From contig OZ038378.1 of the NCBI GenBank assembly GCA_964036045.1, forward strand, positions 184,574,001 to 184,638,000: a DNA stretch of 64,000 bases, written 5' to 3'. Positions 20,546 to 29,444 of the stretch are shown piece after piece. The notes under the pieces were generated by a model. That model saw only the letters and a program-made list of their open reading frames with translations, did no database searches and was not told the origin of the DNA. The translations under genes were made by a program, and so were the position numbers. This stretch comes from Eutreptiella sp. 'Long Island Sound 2002' (Eukaryota > Protista > Euglenida). Every line of letters begins with the position of its first letter. Within the stretch, counting starts at the first letter, position 1.

Positions 20546-21578
20546 TCAAGGAAAAAACCCGTTGTAGCTTCAAAATGCTGACGCCCGTTTTCTGGCGAAA
20601 GACCCAACGTCGTGCGACAACATGGGAAGTGGACAGGCTTTTCGGAGTGCCATAGGGGTAGCCACGTGTGGGAGCCTTAGCCCTACGAATCCAGGGGCTT
20701 CCCTCATTCCGAGCCCAAATTAGAGTTCTTCCAAACCCATACACCAGACAACAGTAGTCATTAGTGCAAGCACTCCCCGCACTGCTGCTGGGCTGGATAT
20801 TTGCAACTAAGTCAAAGCGCAACTCAAATTAAGATGCAGGTTCAAGGAACGTCTGCACAAGTTGCAGTGACGACACAGAAAAGTTCACGGAAAATCCAAC
20901 CTCATGCCGTGCAATAAAAAAACGTTGGAACATGGTAGAACGTCCAAATCTGATTGGACAAGCACTCACCTGGATGACACACAGCCATGGAACTTTCTGA
21001 GTTGCTGCCCCTGGTCGTGCTCACACAAAACGCAGTGGCAGGCGTGAGACCGTTAAGGCGACAAAGGGAGCTTGTGTGGTGTCATGCTTGTGCCTGTTTC
21101 GTTGACTGCCACGCGCACTGTGGCACAGGCAGCAACCCTGAGAGTGCCGACCCTTCACTTAGCCGCCTTGCCAGCCATGCTTCGGGATACGTGCACACAA
21201 GCAAAGCAAATCCGACCTCCTTCCTGGTATTCCTGGTATGGGCAAAGACCAAATCGTGCCTTGGGTGCTGTACCACGTACCGCATGCCAATGGCAGTGAA
21301 GATTGAAGCGCTGAAGTCAAGTCTTTTGGGGGGGCTTGCAAGACCCTGCTGCATTACCTCCGATGCATTAGTTGCACCCCCAAGTTACTTGTACTTTCCA
21401 TTGCATTGCACATGCAACACTCCATTTCCGATGGCAACAACAACATGGGATAACAAAGTAGTCTATCAACGTTTGACATCCACTTGCTACGCCAGTGATT
21501 TTGTATATATTATAACTACTTTACAGTCAACTTTACAATCCCCAGAGCGCACACGGCAAGATTGCGGCCACCGAAATT

Positions 21579-21630
21579 CGCAAGTGTTATCCGGAGAAAC
21601 GCGTTTTCTCCGGATAAGGGCTTATCCGGA
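21579..21630 (+). repeat. Left outer TIR of the foldback element
   Basis: cgcaagtgttatccggagaaacgcgttttctccggataagggcttatccgga is the reverse complement of 26513-26564 except A21616/C26527. Confidence 0.95.
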
Positions 21631-21910
21631 GAAAATTGGCGCGGAGGCGCCAGAACAGCCGCAGAACAGCCGCCAGAGTCAAAAACGTCAAAACCGGGAT
21701 CGAACCGTCTCTGGCGGATATGGCTAAGCAGATACGGGTCCGCAGGCAGATACTGTGGATACGAGCACGCGCGTCAAATTTCAGGCCTACAGTCCCTCGA
21801 AACGTCCCTCGAAACACTGTGAAAAGCGGTCTGTAGACCAATTTTCCGTGAAATTTTCACAGCACAAGTGAGTAGTGTGAAGTAAATGATGAAATCCATT
21901 ACATTGCCAT

Positions 21911-24511
21911 TGTTCATGCACACCAAAAGCATGTCCGTTTTGATTTTCATCCGTTTCTCCCTCATGTTTCATGCACCATCCATCTATGCTTTTTTTTATC
22001 CGTTTTCGATCTTGGTTATTCGCCATCATTGACCCATGCGCAACCTCCCCTTCAAAACAATGTTCAGCCATGTTCATGTGTTGTTCCATCCATGCACACC
22101 AAAAGCATGTTAGTTTTGTTTTCATCCGTTTCTCCCTCCTATTTCATGTCCATCTATCCTTTTTTTATCCATTTCCCTCATTTCCATATTTTGATCTTGG
22201 TTATTGGCCACATGACAACTATCCCTCCCCTCTTTTGCCATGCACAACCTCCCCTTCAAAACAATGTTCATCCATGTTCATCTGTTATTCCATCCATGCA
22301 CACCAAAAGCATGTTAGTTTTGTTTTTCATCCGTTTCTCCCTCCTATTTCCTGTCCATCTATCCTTTTTTTATCTATTTCCCTCATTTCCATATTTTGAT
22401 CTTGGTTATTGGCCACATGACAACTATCCCTCCCCTCTTTTGCCATGCACAACCTCCCCTTCAAAACAATGTTCATCCATGTTCATGTATTGTTCCATCC
22501 ATGCACACCAAAAGCATGTTAGTTTTGTTTTCATCCGTTTCTCCCTCCTATTTCATGTCCATCTATCCTTTTTTTGTCCATTTCCCTCATTTCCATATTT
22601 TGATCTTCGTTATTGGCCACGACAACTATCCCTCCCCTCTTTTGCCATGCACAACCTCCCCTTCAAAACAATGTTCATCCATGTTCATGTGTTATTTCAT
22701 CGATGCACACCAAAAGCATGTTAGTTGTGTTTTTCATCCATTTCTCCCTCCTATTTCATGTCCATCTATCCTTTTTTTGTCCATTTCCCTCATTTCCATA
22801 TTTTGATCTTGGTTATTGGCCACATGACAACTATCCCTCCCCTCTTTTGCCATGCACAACCTCCCCTTCAAAACAATGTTCATCCATGTTCATCTGTTAT
22901 TCCATCCATGCACACCAAAAGCATGTCACTTTCGTTTTCCCCTCCTATTTCATGTCCATCCATCCTTTTTTTATCTATTTCCCTCATTTCCATATTTTGA
23001 TCTTCGTTATTGGCCACATGACAACTATCCCTCCCCTCTTTTGCCATGCACAACCTCCCCTTCAAAACAATGTTCATCCATGTTCATGTGTTATTCCATC
23101 CATGCACACCAAAAGCATGTTACTTTCGTTTTCCCCTCCTATTTCATGTCCATCCATCCTTTTTTTATCCATTTCCCTCATTTCCATATTTTGATCTTGG
23201 TTATTGGCCACATGACAACTATCCCTCCCCTCTTTTGCCATGCACAACCTCCCCTTCAAAACAATGTTCATCCATGTTCATCTGTTATTCCATCCATGCA
23301 CACCAAAAGCATGTTAGTTTTGTTTTTCATCCGTTTCTCCCTCCTATTTCCTGTCCATCTATCCTTTTTTTATCTATTTCCCTCATTTCCATATTTTGAT
23401 CTTGGTTATTGGCCACATGACAACTATCCCTCCCCTCTTTTGCCATGCACAACCTCCCCTTCAAAACAATGTTCATCCATGTTCATGTATTGTTCCATCC
23501 ATGCACACCAAAAGCATGTTAGTTTTGTTTTCATCCGTTTCTCCCTCCTATTTCATGTCCATCTATCCTTTTTTTGTCCATTTCCCTCATTTCCATATTT
23601 TGATCTTCGTTATTGGCCACGACAACTATCCCTCCCCTCTTTTGCCATGCACAACCTCCCCTTCAAAACAATGTTCATCCATGTTCATGTGTTATTTCAT
23701 CGATGCACACCAAAAGCATGTTAGTTGTGTTTTTCATCCATTTCTCCCTCCTATTTCATGTCCATCTATCCTTTTTTTGTCCATTTCCCTCATTTCCATA
23801 TTTTGATCTTGGTTATTGGCCACATGACAACTATCCCTCCCCTCTTTTGCCATGCACAACCTCCCCTTCAAAACAATGTTCATCCATGTTCATCTGTTAT
23901 TCCATCCATGCACACCAAAAGCATGTCACTTTCGTTTTCCCCTCCTATTTCATGTCCATCCATCCTTTTTTTATCTATTTCCCTCATTTCCATATTTTGA
24001 TCTTCGTTATTGGCCACATGACAACTATCCCTCCCCTCTTTTGCCATGCACAACCTCCCCTTCAAAACAATGTTCATCCATGTTCATGTGTTATTCCATC
24101 CATGCACACCAAAAGCATGTTACTTTCGTTTTCCCCTCCTATTTCATGTCCATCCATCCTTTTTTTATCCATTTCCCTCATTTCCATATTTTGATCTTGG
24201 TTATTGGCCACATGACAACTATCCCTCCCCTCTTTTGCCATGCACAACCTCCCCTTCAAAACAATGTTCATCCATGTTCATCTGTTATTCCATCCATGCA
24301 CACCAAAAGCATGTTAGTTGTGTTTTTCATCCATTTCTCCCTCCTATTTCATGTCCATCTATCCTTTTTTTGTCCATTTCCCTCATTTCCATATTTTGAT
24401 CTTGGTTATTGGCCACATGACAACTATCCCTCCCCTCTTTTGCCATGCACAACCTCCCCTTCAAAACAATGTTCATCCATGTTCATCAGTTATTCCATCG
24501 ATTCCATTTTT
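21911..24511 (+). repeat. Left-arm tandem array, 13 monomers of about 176-205 bp, pyrimidine-rich strand
   Basis: Anchor caccaaaagcatg at 21921, 22097, 22301, 22506, 22708, 22913, 23107, 23301, 23506, 23708, 23913, 24107 and 24301. Confidence 0.97.
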
Positions 24512-24583
24512 CGATTCCATTTTCCCTCCGAATGGTTGTTGCGTTATTGTCACAGGGTTGTAGGAAACAAAACATGAGTATAC

Positions 24584-26184
24584 AAAAATGGAATCGATGG
24601 AATAACTGATGAACATGGATGAACATTGTTTTGAAGGGGAGGTTGTGCATGGCAAAAGAGGGGAGGGATAGTTGTCATGTGGCCAATAACCAAGATCAAA
24701 ATATGGAAATGAGGGAAATGGACAAAAAAAGGATAGATGGACATGAAATAGGAGGGAGAAATGGATGAAAAACACAACTAACATGCTTTTGGTGTGCATG
24801 GATGGAATAACAGATGAACATGGATGAACATTGTTTTGAAGGGGAGGTTGTGCATGGCAAAAGAGGGGAGGGATAGTTGTCATGTGGCCAATAACCAAGA
24901 TCAAAATATGGAAATGAGGGAAATGGATAAAAAAAGGATGGATGGACATGAAATAGGAGGGGAAAACGAAAGTAACATGCTTTTGGTGTGCATGGATGGA
25001 ATAACACATGAACATGGATGAACATTGTTTTGAAGGGGAGGTTGTGCATGGCAAAAGAGGGGAGGGATAGTTGTCATGTGGCCAATAACGAAGATCAAAA
25101 TATGGAAATGAGGGAAATAGATAAAAAAAGGATGGATGGACATGAAATAGGAGGGGAAAACGAAAGTGACATGCTTTTGGTGTGCATGGATGGAATAACA
25201 GATGAACATGGATGAACATTGTTTTGAAGGGGAGGTTGTGCATGGCAAAAGAGGGGAGGGATAGTTGTCATGTGGCCAATAACCAAGATCAAAATATGGA
25301 AATGAGGGAAATGGACAAAAAAAGGATAGATGGACATGAAATAGGAGGGAGAAATGGATGAAAAACACAACTAACATGCTTTTGGTGTGCATCGATGAAA
25401 TAACACATGAACATGGATGAACATTGTTTTGAAGGGGAGGTTGTGCATGGCAAAAGAGGGGAGGGATAGTTGTCGTGGCCAATAACGAAGATCAAAATAT
25501 GGAAATGAGGGAAATGGATAAAAAAAGGATAGATGGACATGAAATAGGAGGGAGAAACGGATGAAAACAAAACTAACATGCTTTTGGTGTGCATGGATGG
25601 AACAATACATGAACATGGATGAACATTGTTTTGAAGGGGAGGTTGTGCATGGCAAAAGAGGGGAGGGATAGTTGTCATGTGGCCAATAACCAAGATCAAA
25701 ATATGGAAATGAGGGAAATAGATAAAAAAAGGATAGATGGACAGGAAATAGGAGGGAGAAACGGATGAAAAACAAAACTAACATGCTTTTGGTGTGCATG
25801 GATGGAATAACAGATGAACATGGATGAACATTGTTTTGAAGGGGAGGTTGTGCATGGCAAAAGAGGGGAGGGATAGTTGTCATGTGGCCAATAACCAAGA
25901 TCAAAATATGGAAATGAGGGAAATGGATAAAAAAAGGATAGATGGACATGAAATAGGAGGGAGAAACGGATGAAAACAAAACTAACATGCTTTTGGTGTG
26001 CATGGATGGAACAACACATGAACATGGCTGAACATTGTTTTGAAGGGGAGGTTGCGCATGGGTCAATGATGGCGAATAACCAAGATCGAAAACGGATAAA
26101 AAAAAGCATAGATGGATGGTGCATGAAACATGAGGGAGAAACGGATGAAAATCAAAACGGACATGCTTTTGGTGTGCATGAACA
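24584..26184 (-). repeat. Right-arm tandem array, 8 monomers, inverted relative to the left arm
   Basis: Eight copies of catgcttttggtg between about 24782 and 26174. Mirror coordinates sum to 48095 for outer monomers and 49095 for inner monomers. Confidence 0.97.
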
Positions 26185-26512
26185 ATGGCAATGTAATGGA
26201 TTTCATCATTTACTTCACACTACTCACTTGTGCTGTGAAAATTTCACGGAAAATTGGTCTACAGACCGCTTTTCACAGTGTTTCGAGGGACGTTTCGAGG
26301 GACTGTAGGCCTGAAATTTGACGCGCGTGCTCGTATCCACAGTATCTGCCTGCGGACCCGTATCTGCTTAGCCATATCCTCCCCGATGCCAAAATCAGCC
26401 TTTCATCCGTAAAATTTTCAGAGAAAATCCAGCCGGAAGGTTTTACTCCCTCCCGCGCAGCGCCGCAAACAGGTGCCGCAAACGCGGGAGGCGCCTGGGC
26501 CCCCCCTACCGG

Positions 26513-26564
26513 TCCGGATAAGCCCTCATCCGGAGAAAACGCGTTTCTCCGGATAACACTTGCG
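26513..26564 (-). repeat. Right outer TIR of the foldback element
   Basis: Reverse complement of 21579-21630 with one mismatch, followed directly by the TSD copy. Confidence 0.95.
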
Positions 26565-26749
26565 ACCGAAATTCCGGTCCGAATTATCGCGCACATCTAT
26601 ATCCCAAGAAATACCTCGCATGCTGTTTGCGTGTGCTTTATTGTAGGAGACGTAAGTCGTTCAAGATCTCTTTTTGGAAAGATTTAAACGCACAGAAGTG
26701 CCTTTCTTGTTCGTCGTTTCGTGACACATAGTGTGCCACTGCGGCCAAG

Positions 26750-26767
26750 CTTGTCTTGTTTTGGCAG
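26750..26767 (+). promoter_or_regulatory. Splice-acceptor-like site 7 nt upstream of the FYR gene ATG
   Basis: cttgtcttgttttggcAG|ttcccca ATG. Confidence 0.45.
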
Positions 26768-26774
26768 TTCCCCA

Positions 26775-29444
26775 ATGAAACTGAACCTGCCGCTGCAGCT
26801 GGGCAACGGCGCGGTGCTTTTGGACACCGGTGTTGTTGACTGGCACCGCCCAGCATACCATTCCGAACGGTACATTTACCCCATCGGCTTCAAAGTCGCA
26901 CGGCTGCAGGATTCCTACATCAATCCACACAAGAAGGTCAACTATTTGTTCGAAGTTATTGACGGGGGCGACGAGCCCGCTTTCCGAGTCACATCGGAGG
27001 ATGATCCGGGAAACCCAGTTGTTGGCAAGCCCTCTAGTAATGTGGCGCAGATTGCGCTGAATCGCATCGTTGATGGGAAGCTAAAGCATGGGCTGCGTGC
27101 CACGTACCGGAAGGCCGTTTCGGGACCACACACGTTTTGCTTCGATCGACGGGAAGTTGTGGAAGCTCTGGCAAGATTGCCCGGTGCAGAAAAGTGCAAG
27201 AAATACGACCAGAGGATCGTGCTATCGAGCGCTGCAATGACTCCATACCAGAGATATCAAGCCCCGAAGACGCTGCCGCCACCAGCTGAAGAGAATGACA
27301 AAGCAGACAACGATGCTTCACGTAGGAGTACAACGCGACAGAGATCCCTGCAAGGGCAGAAGCGGAAAGCCTCGGATGCAGCCGAGTCAGAAAGGAAGCC
27401 GAAGCGGGCCAAGGACGCGGAGCAAGATCGCAAGCCGCGGAAGGAAAAACAGCCTGAAGTCAGGCCAAAACTGGCGGCCAAGGTGGAAAACAAGAGTCGG
27501 CCCGCACAGGTTAATGCAGCAGTGCCCACCCAAGCTCCCCGCGAGGATTTTGGTATGACCAAACTGCTTTCAACTTATTTTAAGGTTGAAGAATCTCGGG
27601 CGGCTTCTGCGGGACCGGGATCGGTTCTCGAGTGCTTGACATTGTGCCAGCCAGCAGAACTGCAGAAGAAGATTTACCAGCAGTGCTTGCAGTGCACCGA
27701 CGAAATTGGAACCTCATCCACTTCCAGCTCACAGAGTAATGTCACGTGTATGCTGCGTTCCGTTTGTGCCCACCCAGAATTAGGACTATCTAGCATCGGA
27801 TCTCTTTCCGCCGATCAACGTGACAAGTTGCTTCGGGAATTTCCGGTGTCTCTTGAAAACGAGTTCTCCCCGAAGTTGATGCTAGATTGCGCGCAAACAA
27901 GAGACAAGTGGATTGCGATGAGTCCCAAGATTTCCGTGTTGAGCACTCTCATCGAGCATTGCTTAGCCGAGGGGGAGTGTATGGTTGTCTTCACGGAGTC
28001 GGATTCTTCGTTTCACGTGGTTGCGAAAGCTCTCGCTGTGCTAAAACGGGATTTTGTAACAATCTCAGAACTCACGACGCATCATTCACTGCTGCACGAT
28101 ATCCTGTCGTTGCCGCAGAACGAGACAGGTCAGTCCGCTTATTCGAAACACATATTTCTGTGTAAGATGGCCAGCGTCCGAGTCCCGTTGTTCTTTGTGG
28201 ATAAAGTTGTGTTCTTTGACGCCCCAGTGGACAAGGTACACGAGCGTCAGGCGATGGTGTCGTGTGTGAATCCGACGACCGGGAAGAAGAAGGTGCATTT
28301 TTACCACCTCGTACTCCTGAAAACCGTGGAGGAAAGATTCTGTGCTGGCTCTTGGTTCATGCATTACTGCGGTGGCACTACTGTGCCGTCATCGGACACA
28401 CCGGAAGTAACGAAAGAACTGTCGTCCAAAGGAGCCTTTCTGTATAGTCCAGAGGACGTTCCTCAATCCAGGATTCGTTCCGTGCAAGACGAGTTCCTTG
28501 GGAAGTTCACTTCTCTTCTGAACATCTTCAGAGCCCCAAGACACGCAGTTGCGAACACCCGGGCTCATGTTGCTGCAGATTATTTCACAGTCCGGTCTCA
28601 TAAAGCACACACACATGAAGTGAGAGCCTCTGATTTGCCGGAAACTTGCGAAGAATTTTTGGCCGCTTTCCCTGCCTCGAAAGATGGGGAGAATGCTCGG
28701 GCGTACACAGGGACTTTAAAATCCCGCTTGGTGTCTGGGCGTGCAGGGAAAGTAAACGAAGCGGTGGGATCAACAGAAGCCAAGGATTCTGACAGAGCAA
28801 CCGGCGCTTGTGACTCAACCGGTGCGAAGACAGCAGATTGTCCCAAAGAAGGCAGCAGTGCTCCCGCGAACGCAGATGAGGCCTCCAGGGTTTGCGACGC
28901 AGCACGAAATTTGTCCCTCCTGGCCGGGCAAATACCTCCGACGAAGCATCATGTCGCATCCCTTCAAAGCAATGCAGACGCCAGTTTCCACCTCCTTCCG
29001 CTGGGCATTGCACACCCCCGGGCTGTGGCAGCGTCGATTGCAGCCGTGAGAGGGATGGTTTTGTTGAGTGAAAAACCTTGCGCCGAATGGCACCAAGATG
29101 CTCTCAGTGATCTCGCCAACTTGCAAAAACGCTCTGAAGAAAGCGAAAGCAAGCCCCCACCAGCGAAAGTTCGCAAAGTTCCTGGTGCCTATTTGTCTCC
29201 TCGAGTCCAGTTTCCCAGTGTGCTTGCTCCGTTGGACACCGAGGAACAGAAGACGCTGGCTGGCTTTCAGAAGCAGCATGGCAAAAGGACAGAGATCCAG
29301 TCCAAGCTGCAACAAATGGAGAAAGGTGTCGGTGAGCAGGAGCTGTCGCTGGATGCCGAGGAAACGAGGCAACGCAGAGTTGTAAAGACTCTTGCCAAAC
29401 GTCATTCAGAACGACGCAGCAAAGGTGCTATTCCGTCAAGTTGA
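26775..29444 (+). CDS. Intronless 889-aa protein: FYRN/FYRC domains, basic linker, degenerate SNF2-family helicase C-terminal lobe, C-terminal coiled coil
   Basis: Long uninterrupted ORF. The N-terminus matches the FYR pattern (YHSERYIYPIGFKVAR...YLFEVIDGGDEPAFRV...SGPHTFCF...EALARLPGAEKCKKY). The middle follows SNF2 lobe 2 order (QKKIY, LRSVCAHPEL, SPKISVLSTLI, VVFT, VVFFD, QA, VHFYHLVLLKTVEE). Confidence 0.9.
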   Translation: MKLNLPLQLGNGAVLLDTGVVDWHRPAYHSERYIYPIGFKVARLQDSYINPHKKVNYLFEVIDGGDEPAFRVTSEDDPGNPVVGKPSSNVAQIALNRIVDGKLKHGLRATYRKAVSGPHTFCFDRREVVEALARLPGAEKCKKYDQRIVLSSAAMTPYQRYQAPKTLPPPAEENDKADNDASRRSTTRQRSLQGQKRKASDAAESERKPKRAKDAEQDRKPRKEKQPEVRPKLAAKVENKSRPAQVNAAVPTQAPREDFGMTKLLSTYFKVEESRAASAGPGSVLECLTLCQPAELQKKIYQQCLQCTDEIGTSSTSSSQSNVTCMLRSVCAHPELGLSSIGSLSADQRDKLLREFPVSLENEFSPKLMLDCAQTRDKWIAMSPKISVLSTLIEHCLAEGECMVVFTESDSSFHVVAKALAVLKRDFVTISELTTHHSLLHDILSLPQNETGQSAYSKHIFLCKMASVRVPLFFVDKVVFFDAPVDKVHERQAMVSCVNPTTGKKKVHFYHLVLLKTVEERFCAGSWFMHYCGGTTVPSSDTPEVTKELSSKGAFLYSPEDVPQSRIRSVQDEFLGKFTSLLNIFRAPRHAVANTRAHVAADYFTVRSHKAHTHEVRASDLPETCEEFLAAFPASKDGENARAYTGTLKSRLVSGRAGKVNEAVGSTEAKDSDRATGACDSTGAKTADCPKEGSSAPANADEASRVCDAARNLSLLAGQIPPTKHHVASLQSNADASFHLLPLGIAHPRAVAASIAAVRGMVLLSEKPCAEWHQDALSDLANLQKRSEESESKPPPAKVRKVPGAYLSPRVQFPSVLAPLDTEEQKTLAGFQKQHGKRTEIQSKLQQMEKGVGEQELSLDAEETRQRRVVKTLAKRHSERRSKGAIPSS

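Follow-up and report, generated by a model that had tools for sequence, protein, structure and literature searches.

Foldback-type elements such as Drosophila FB and nematode Tm1 have been grouped with Mutator, and a target-site duplication (TSD) of 9 bp is the size commonly made by transposases of Mutator-like elements (MULEs) (PMC3169594). In Tetris/DAIBAM of Drosophila virilis, a foldback element shares its ends with a miniature inverted-repeat transposable element (MITE), carries ~220-bp tandem repeats in its arms and is bounded by 8-9-bp TSDs (PMC4079207). In maize, alternative transposition of Ac/Ds gives rise to composite insertions that carry inverted transposon duplications (bioRxiv 10.1101/2020.01.07.897926), and at the Mu killer locus part of MuDR is duplicated in inverted orientation, with TIRA present twice (PMC3440606). 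The present analysis concerns a palindromic, satellite-filled element of 4,986 bp in the euglenid Eutreptiella sp., located at 21579-26564 of a 64,000-bp stretch of DNA, termed here the window (C1:184574001-184638000 of a 2.28-Gb assembly; element positions are window coordinates throughout). An earlier note on this DNA had taken the element for a member of a probably undescribed foldback family. We conclude, with a probability of about 0.78, that it is a one-off: a single-copy, nested and rearranged chimera of three dispersed repeat families, Mutator-like in character, and neither founder nor member of a foldback family.

Composition and uniqueness of the element

Two nested sets of inverted repeats define the structure. 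A 9-bp direct repeat, ACCGAAATT, abuts the two ends of the element without a gap (21570-21578 and 26565-26573), and is followed inwards by a pair of outer terminal inverted repeats (TIRs; 21579-21630 and 26513-26564), which match at 51 of 52 bases. A 21-mer of the outer terminus occurs twice in the window, versus zero occurrences expected by chance. The inner inverted repeat consists of a left arm of 2,796 bp (21716-24511) and a right arm of 1,796 bp (24584-26379), separated by a spacer of 72 bp (24512-24583). No recognisable coding capacity was detected in the element, none of its open reading frames (ORFs) containing a Pfam domain, and the long ORFs that run over the satellite are a mechanical by-product of its skewed composition. 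The structure set out in the earlier note (the TSD, the 52-bp TIRs, the arm lengths, the monomers of ~200 bp and the lack of coding capacity) was thereby reproduced base for base.

The outer termini and their TSD belong to one dispersed family (the outer family), whereas both arms represent a mirror-duplicated part of a second, satellite-bearing family (the inner family), and a 129-bp piece of a third dispersed repeat lies between the right arm and the right end. The three junctions that create this composite (at ~21715/21716, 24511-24532 and 26379/26380) were each searched for in the whole genome, and each is present once; elsewhere a match covers one side of the junction but not the other. 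In every genome search only the 40 best-scoring matches were scored, further candidates being counted at first look only.

These results bear directly on the view that the element is a bona fide foldback-family member, with long satellite-filled TIRs as its defining structure, that recently transposed as a 5-kb unit. We regard this as improbable. The perfect 9-bp TSD and the intact termini speak for it, as does an architecture that resembles Tetris/DAIBAM, a foldback element (FB) sharing its terminal portions with a MITE and carrying ~220-bp arm repeats (PMC4079207); cut-and-paste transposition, moreover, leaves no donor, so that a single copy is compatible with one past move. On the other side, no second copy of any of the three junctions exists in the 2.28 Gb, ordinary outer-family members are ~1 kb long and satellite-free, the arms open with the complete terminus of another, non-palindromic family that makes 9-bp TSDs of its own, and the right side carries the fragment of the third repeat. 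The foldback-family reading is thus already largely refuted, and a single past move of the composite is what remains of it.

Comparison with the described foldback families leads to the same placement. FB and Tm1 resemble the window element in their 9-bp TSD, their long composite inverted arms with tandem repeats and the non-coding nature of members, but the repeats that define those families are short (10-31 bp, ~14 bp) and extend toward the termini, while the repeats here are 194-205 bp long, lie at least 455 bp from the element ends and derive from another element. Tetris/DAIBAM provides the closest described architecture: it too has monomers of ~200 bp in long inverted arms, terminal portions in common with a short MITE-like family, a 9-bp TSD, no coding capacity and few "complete" copies. 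In Tetris, however, arms, repeats and termini belong to one family, and several copies show the architecture; here a second, nested family has supplied the arms together with its complete terminus, and the arrangement is unique. Inverted arms filled with tandem repeats occur in the window copy only and are not family-wide, and the 9-bp TSD (ACCGAAATT) surrounds the outer ends, the inner mirror unit being without one. Because the foldback architecture is recurrent in FB, Tm1 and Tetris, and not here, the element was not classed as a member of a foldback family.

The outer family

The left end of the element occupies 21579-21715 on the plus strand. It begins with the terminus CGCAAGTGTTATCCGGAG, includes the 52-bp TIR, and is 100% identical to other copies over 21579-21688. 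A genome search with this end gave at least 848 first-look candidates, and all 40 of the scored matches were 98-100% identical. In nearly all of these 40 the match sets in with the base that follows the TSD (1-2 bases earlier in a few and 5 in one), and it ends 110 bp into the element. The homology begins exactly at CGCAAG in ~30 other outer-family loci, and it is this shared terminus that the left TSD copy abuts; the right TSD copy matches the left one. An alternative reading of the ends in the earlier note, as a 7-bp TSD with T...A termini, is refuted by this common starting point and by the 9-bp length of the family's TSDs.

Twelve complete outer-family copies, the window copy included, could be delimited in the loci fetched from the genome, and 11 of them are 1.0-1.5 kb long. 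Perfect 9-bp TSDs flank nine of the 12, eight of nine bases match in two others, and one copy has none. The ordinary members share an interior of ~1 kb at 88-95% identity and are neither palindromic nor satellite-bearing. The window copy lacks this interior, having only the 110-bp end and the TIR of 52-64 bp in common with them. Next to the left arm stand 27 bp (21689-21715) that derive from the outer-family interior but lack ~45 bp present in ordinary members. On the right, the outer family's 52-bp TIR lies at 26513-26564 on the minus strand, preceded by CCGG (from 26509). In all, what remains of the outer family in the window copy is 137 bp at the left end and 52 bp at the right, the ordinary interior of ~0.8 kb being gone.

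The identity of the ends to other copies over 110 bp implies that the outer family is young, which upholds the recency proposed in the earlier note. Its description of a non-autonomous element of cut-and-paste type with a genuine 9-bp TSD also agrees with the family termini and TSDs; many copies of the TIR have flanking 9-bp duplications, a finding that the earlier note had made decisive for its case. The assignment to a foldback family did not survive, since ordinary members of neither the outer nor the inner family are foldback elements and all composite junctions are unique. The ACCGAAATT duplication shows that the outer ends integrated at this site, and not that a foldback element transposed.

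Several further features of the outer family were observed. A near-perfect palindrome of ~26 bp, TCCGGAGAAACGCGTTTTCTCCGGA, lies inside the outer TIR (window 21590-21622, with the mirror site in 26513-26564); it produces minus-strand self-matches in every copy and may be a putative transposase-binding site. One variant of 1,465 bp (L008:146-1610; C3:80961207-80962671) carries the 110-bp end together with its adjoining region twice, once at either end, and hence extension of TIRs by inverted duplication occurs in the outer family as well. A tRNA-like module, suspected from GGGATCGAACC, was discarded, since neither ARAGORN, run on 12 loci and the window, nor Rfam at E<=0.1 gave a match.

The inner, satellite-bearing family

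The left arm opens at its outer edge with a 77-bp inner-family terminus, GGATATGGCTAAGCAG (21716-21792, plus strand), followed by a unique subterminal region of 241 bp, termed region A (21793-22033, plus strand), and the satellite (22034-24511, plus strand). The segment 21716-22033 with satellite recurs at at least 25 loci at 94-100% identity, always from the same base. The first 77 bp are also found alone, in inverted orientation, 1.6-20.6 kb away, and are therefore interpreted as the TIR of the family. Two complete copies of 2.1 kb each were present in the fetched loci (L048 and L052), both bounded by this terminus and both flanked by perfect 9-bp TSDs (AAATCTGGG and GCAAAATGC, respectively). 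In each, a TIR and region A are followed by a single satellite array in one orientation, then by ~0.8 kb of unique sequence and the second TIR. Ordinary members of the inner family thus have a single satellite array and are non-palindromic. At four other loci (L033, L046, L047 and L050), the copy runs past the satellite into sequence identical to window 24533-24583. The 205-bp satellite accordingly travels inside a transposon, and its copy number is variable.

The longer relatives showed additional features. They carry a second, different satellite, with a unit of ~159 bp, toward their other end (L067:1-158). Arrays of this unit (e.g., C13:40040128-40042751 and C1:35109926-35113024) lie 1.5-4 kb from unpaired inner termini (C13:40044275 and C1:35114548), from which long members would appear to have a distinct subterminal array at each end. 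Walking into a relative of 6.1 kb (L067, L077) yielded another satellite and low-complexity ORFs without domains. Two inverted inner termini that are 20.6 kb apart (C19:46297878-46318522) mark a candidate long, possibly autonomous member. In L042 (L042:1745-1894; C4:~106430236-106430248), an ordinary outer element with the TSD TAAATTCAG lies 2 bp from an inner-family terminus, representing a second case in which the outer and inner families are in direct contact.

Origin of the mirror unit

The two arms carry the same end of the inner family in opposite orientations. The right arm comprises the satellite (24584-26061, minus strand; 7.3 monomers), which mirrors that of the left arm except for a 1,000-bp duplication, and then region A with the same left-type 77-bp terminus (26062-26379, minus strand), stopping exactly at the family terminus. 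The outer edges of the mirror unit are therefore both exact inner-family termini. As arrays, the satellites extend over 22034-24499 on the left (12.3 copies) and 24596-26061 on the right (7.3 copies), in monomers of 194-205 bp. The left arm begins with monomers of 204, 205, 202, 205, 194 and 194 bp, after which a 1,000-bp block of five monomers is repeated exactly.

Leaving aside this exact tandem duplication, which is confined to the left arm, the two arms are separated by a single mismatch (at 23576). Compared with the nearest other copy scored (L046, on C18), the right arm shows 13 mismatches and two indels over 1,847 bp. The arms are thus clearly closer to one another than to other sampled copies, indicating that they were derived from each other or from one source, or that they have been homogenised.

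The centre is asymmetric. The last partial monomer of the left arm ends in TCGATTCCATTTT, and a second copy of this 13-bp sequence (24511-24523) is followed by a 9-bp filler, CCCTCCGAA (24524-24532). The right arm continues 51 bp beyond its satellite into ordinary sequence of the long inner-family subgroup (24533-24583, minus strand), which has no partner in the left arm, the latter ending with satellite. The centre had been described in the earlier note as a unique segment of 72 bp. Its length is correct, but 24533-24583 is an ordinary inner-family continuation, with the filler and the second copy of the 13-bp sequence making up the other 21 bp. The join through a 13-bp tandem duplication and a 9-bp filler bears the signature of end-joining or template switching, and not of homologous exchange.

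The flanks of the mirror unit are unrelated. On the left it adjoins GTCTCTGGC (outer-family interior) and on the right TCCCCGATG, with two of nine flanking bases matching, so that the unit has no TSD of its own. The loss of the outer-family interior could be a deletion tied to the same event.

The outer termini with their 9-bp TSD enclose the mirror-duplicated left part of an inner element and the 129-bp piece of the third repeat. We propose that the mirror unit arose locally, its edges having been cut by transposase and its centre sealed by end-joining. As the route we favour one aberrant transposition of the "alternative" or sister-chromatid type, in which the same end of sister copies would have been used, followed by end-joining; a single step would then explain why the termini are exact and the arms nearly identical, and how the junction arose. 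One arm may later have gained its additional 1,000 bp of satellite by unequal exchange. The composite would have formed either in place, inside a resident outer element of ~1 kb, or elsewhere, with one move to the present site. For the element to move, its outer ends, or else the two identical inner ends, must still be recognised by a transposase. The maize Ac/Ds composite insertions offer a parallel, consisting as they do of an inverted duplication of a partial transposon with exact termini and an internal repair-type junction. They differ in that they belong to the hAT superfamily, while here the mechanism is deduced and the mirror unit shows neither a TSD nor a demonstrable duplication or deletion at its flanks.

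The next most likely route would begin with two closely linked inverted insertions, followed by deletion between them. According to this possible, though unlikely, account, two inner elements hopped locally in opposite orientations, one into the outer element and the other into the third-repeat fragment, and a deletion removed both far ends; the arms would be alike because they came from a shared master copy or through gene conversion. Exact termini with unrelated flanks and no shared TSD would all follow from ordinary steps, as would the differing satellite copy numbers of the arms and the asymmetric end-joining centre, and the inner family is young, its copies being 97-100% identical. The account is weakened by the arms themselves, which differ by one mismatch in 1,796 bp, as opposed to 13 mismatches and two indels for the closest sampled copy, and by its need for two events within ~1 kb in addition to the deletion.

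The same details were weighed for an assembly or sequencing artefact, in which the inverted arm or the extra 1,000 bp would stem from chimeric palindromic long reads or from mis-assembly of repeats. An extra block that measures 1,000 bp to the base, a periodicity that is perfect over 1,164 bp and arms that are almost identical might arouse such a suspicion, and the structure is known from the assembly alone, satellite copy number being its least secure detail. Chimeras caused by a missing adapter are symmetric and lack a spacer, whereas this palindrome is asymmetric, with an overrun of 51 bp on one arm, a 13-bp duplication and a 9-bp filler. The two arms are also joined to different flanks, each of which makes sense, and matching TIRs with a perfect TSD enclose the whole structure, which sits amid unique sequence in a contig of >197 Mb. 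Finally, the 1,000 bp amount to five whole monomers (205+202+205+194+194), as unequal exchange would give. An artefact is therefore very improbable.

Matches to the miRNA precursors MIR7723 and MIR837 in Rfam (24420-24675) were rejected; they appear on both strands, score far below the gathering thresholds and reflect the long perfect hairpin.

The third repeat and the surroundings of the element

The third-repeat fragment (26380-26508, plus strand) stops at the fixed end of its family, ...GGGCCCCCCCTA. At least 40 copies of this repeat are dispersed in the genome, and in all 11 loci examined the repeat ends at this same base with differing flanks. Its interpretation as a 5'-truncated retroelement was dropped, as the copies also differ by internal deletions. 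No inverted copy of its terminus was found within 1.5 kb, and its ORFs gave no Pfam match. Another outer-family copy, in L056 (C8:37035530-37035832), contains the fixed end of the third repeat 66 bp into its 110-bp end, and the relative orientation of the two agrees with that in the window; outer-family ends may be preferred insertion sites of the third repeat.

An ORF of 907 aa (window 26721-29444, plus strand) starts ~150 bp downstream of the right TSD, such that the element sits just upstream of a gene, or in its 5' region. When the element was excised in silico, no ORF extended across the site and no convincing gene was restored. The left flank is single-copy in the genome, so that the assembly contains no empty site or alternative haplotig, and a paralogous empty site was ruled out on the same grounds.

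Superfamily and candidate transposases

The length of the TSD distinguishes among the superfamilies to which such ends could belong. A TSD of ~9 bp (8-11 bp), typical of Mutator/MULE, was observed in the window, as a perfect repeat in nine of the 12 outer-family copies, and in both of the complete inner-family copies. The 7-8-bp TSD of Galileo/P does not fit, the family termini lying at CGCAAG and the abutting repeats being 9 bp long; the 9-bp TSD, the length preferred in the earlier note, accords with Mutator/FB-type elements. Nor is the element a Pack-MULE, since its interior consists of two other dispersed repeats in place of captured fragments of host genes.

The MULE domain PF10551 is represented by at least 739 candidates in the genome, of which 150 score over the Pfam cut-off, many of them in open frames of ~1,000 aa. 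Because of the 9-bp TSDs and this abundance of MULE DDE domains, we infer that both families are probably mobilised in trans by Mutator-like DDE transposases. Non-autonomous, MULE-derived, MITE-like elements are alike in their 9-bp TSDs, TIRs of 52-110 bp, lack of coding sequence, high copy number and very young copies, and in a host genome full of MULE DDE transposase genes. They differ in that no autonomous partner with matching termini was found here, and in that the window copy contains other repeats instead of the ordinary interior. Approximately 15 PF10551 matches occur on one strand of C16:6449067-6815995, mostly in an identical open frame of 338 aa and spaced at ~12-50 kb; a block with a Mutator-type gene seems to have been amplified in tandem here.

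A number of observations weigh against the conclusion that the element is a Mutator-like chimera formed by aberrant transposition. Alternative transposition alone would leave the unrelated flanks and the missing TSD of the mirror unit unexplained, and an extra deletion or a more complex event would be needed. The satellite copy number, and even the inversion itself, are taken from the assembly only, and a closer relative of the arms may have escaped notice among matches beyond the best 40. Neither terminus was found on a copy that bears a transposase: of the 150 PF10551 matches scored, none adjoins a listed outer or inner terminus, and the fetched interiors of both families gave no Pfam match. 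The assignment to Mutator is drawn from the length of the TSD, the structure of the TIRs and the abundance of MULEs in this genome.

Significance

In function, the closest analogue of an inverted partial Mutator duplication with a doubled terminus is Mu killer. Both loci are natural inverted duplications of the terminal part of a (here probable) Mutator-type element with two copies of one terminus; both measure about 4.7 kb and could form a long hairpin if transcribed. In Mu killer, however, transposase coding sequence is duplicated and both hairpin RNA and silencing have been demonstrated, whereas the duplicated sequence here is a non-coding satellite. We give only an outside chance to the possibility that the mirror-duplicated end acts in the manner of Mu killer, with small RNAs from the hairpin silencing the satellite-bearing Mutator-like family. 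Read-through transcription would then produce an RNA with a stem of ~2 kb, for which the neighbouring gene, with its long ORF ~150 bp downstream, might be the source. If so, the locus would be a naturally arisen transposon "vaccine" in a euglenid, a group in which, to our knowledge, transposon control is essentially unexplored.

The structure is ordinary transposon debris, and nested or rearranged non-autonomous elements are well known from plants and insects. The outer and inner families themselves are probably undescribed; their kind is well known. Repeats in the host genome are largely unclassified, and in one published assembly of Euglena gracilis, probably a different one from that analysed here, unclassified repeats account for 32.7% (PMC11252322). 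The definition of two young, apparently still mobile families with 9-bp TSDs, together with a third repeat, is thus of modest descriptive value. The locus also provides a clean natural example of an inverted duplication between exact transposon termini, such as alternative transposition produces, and inverted duplications of this kind can seed silencing by hairpin RNA. It further serves as a caution that a TSD around a palindrome is no proof of a foldback family.

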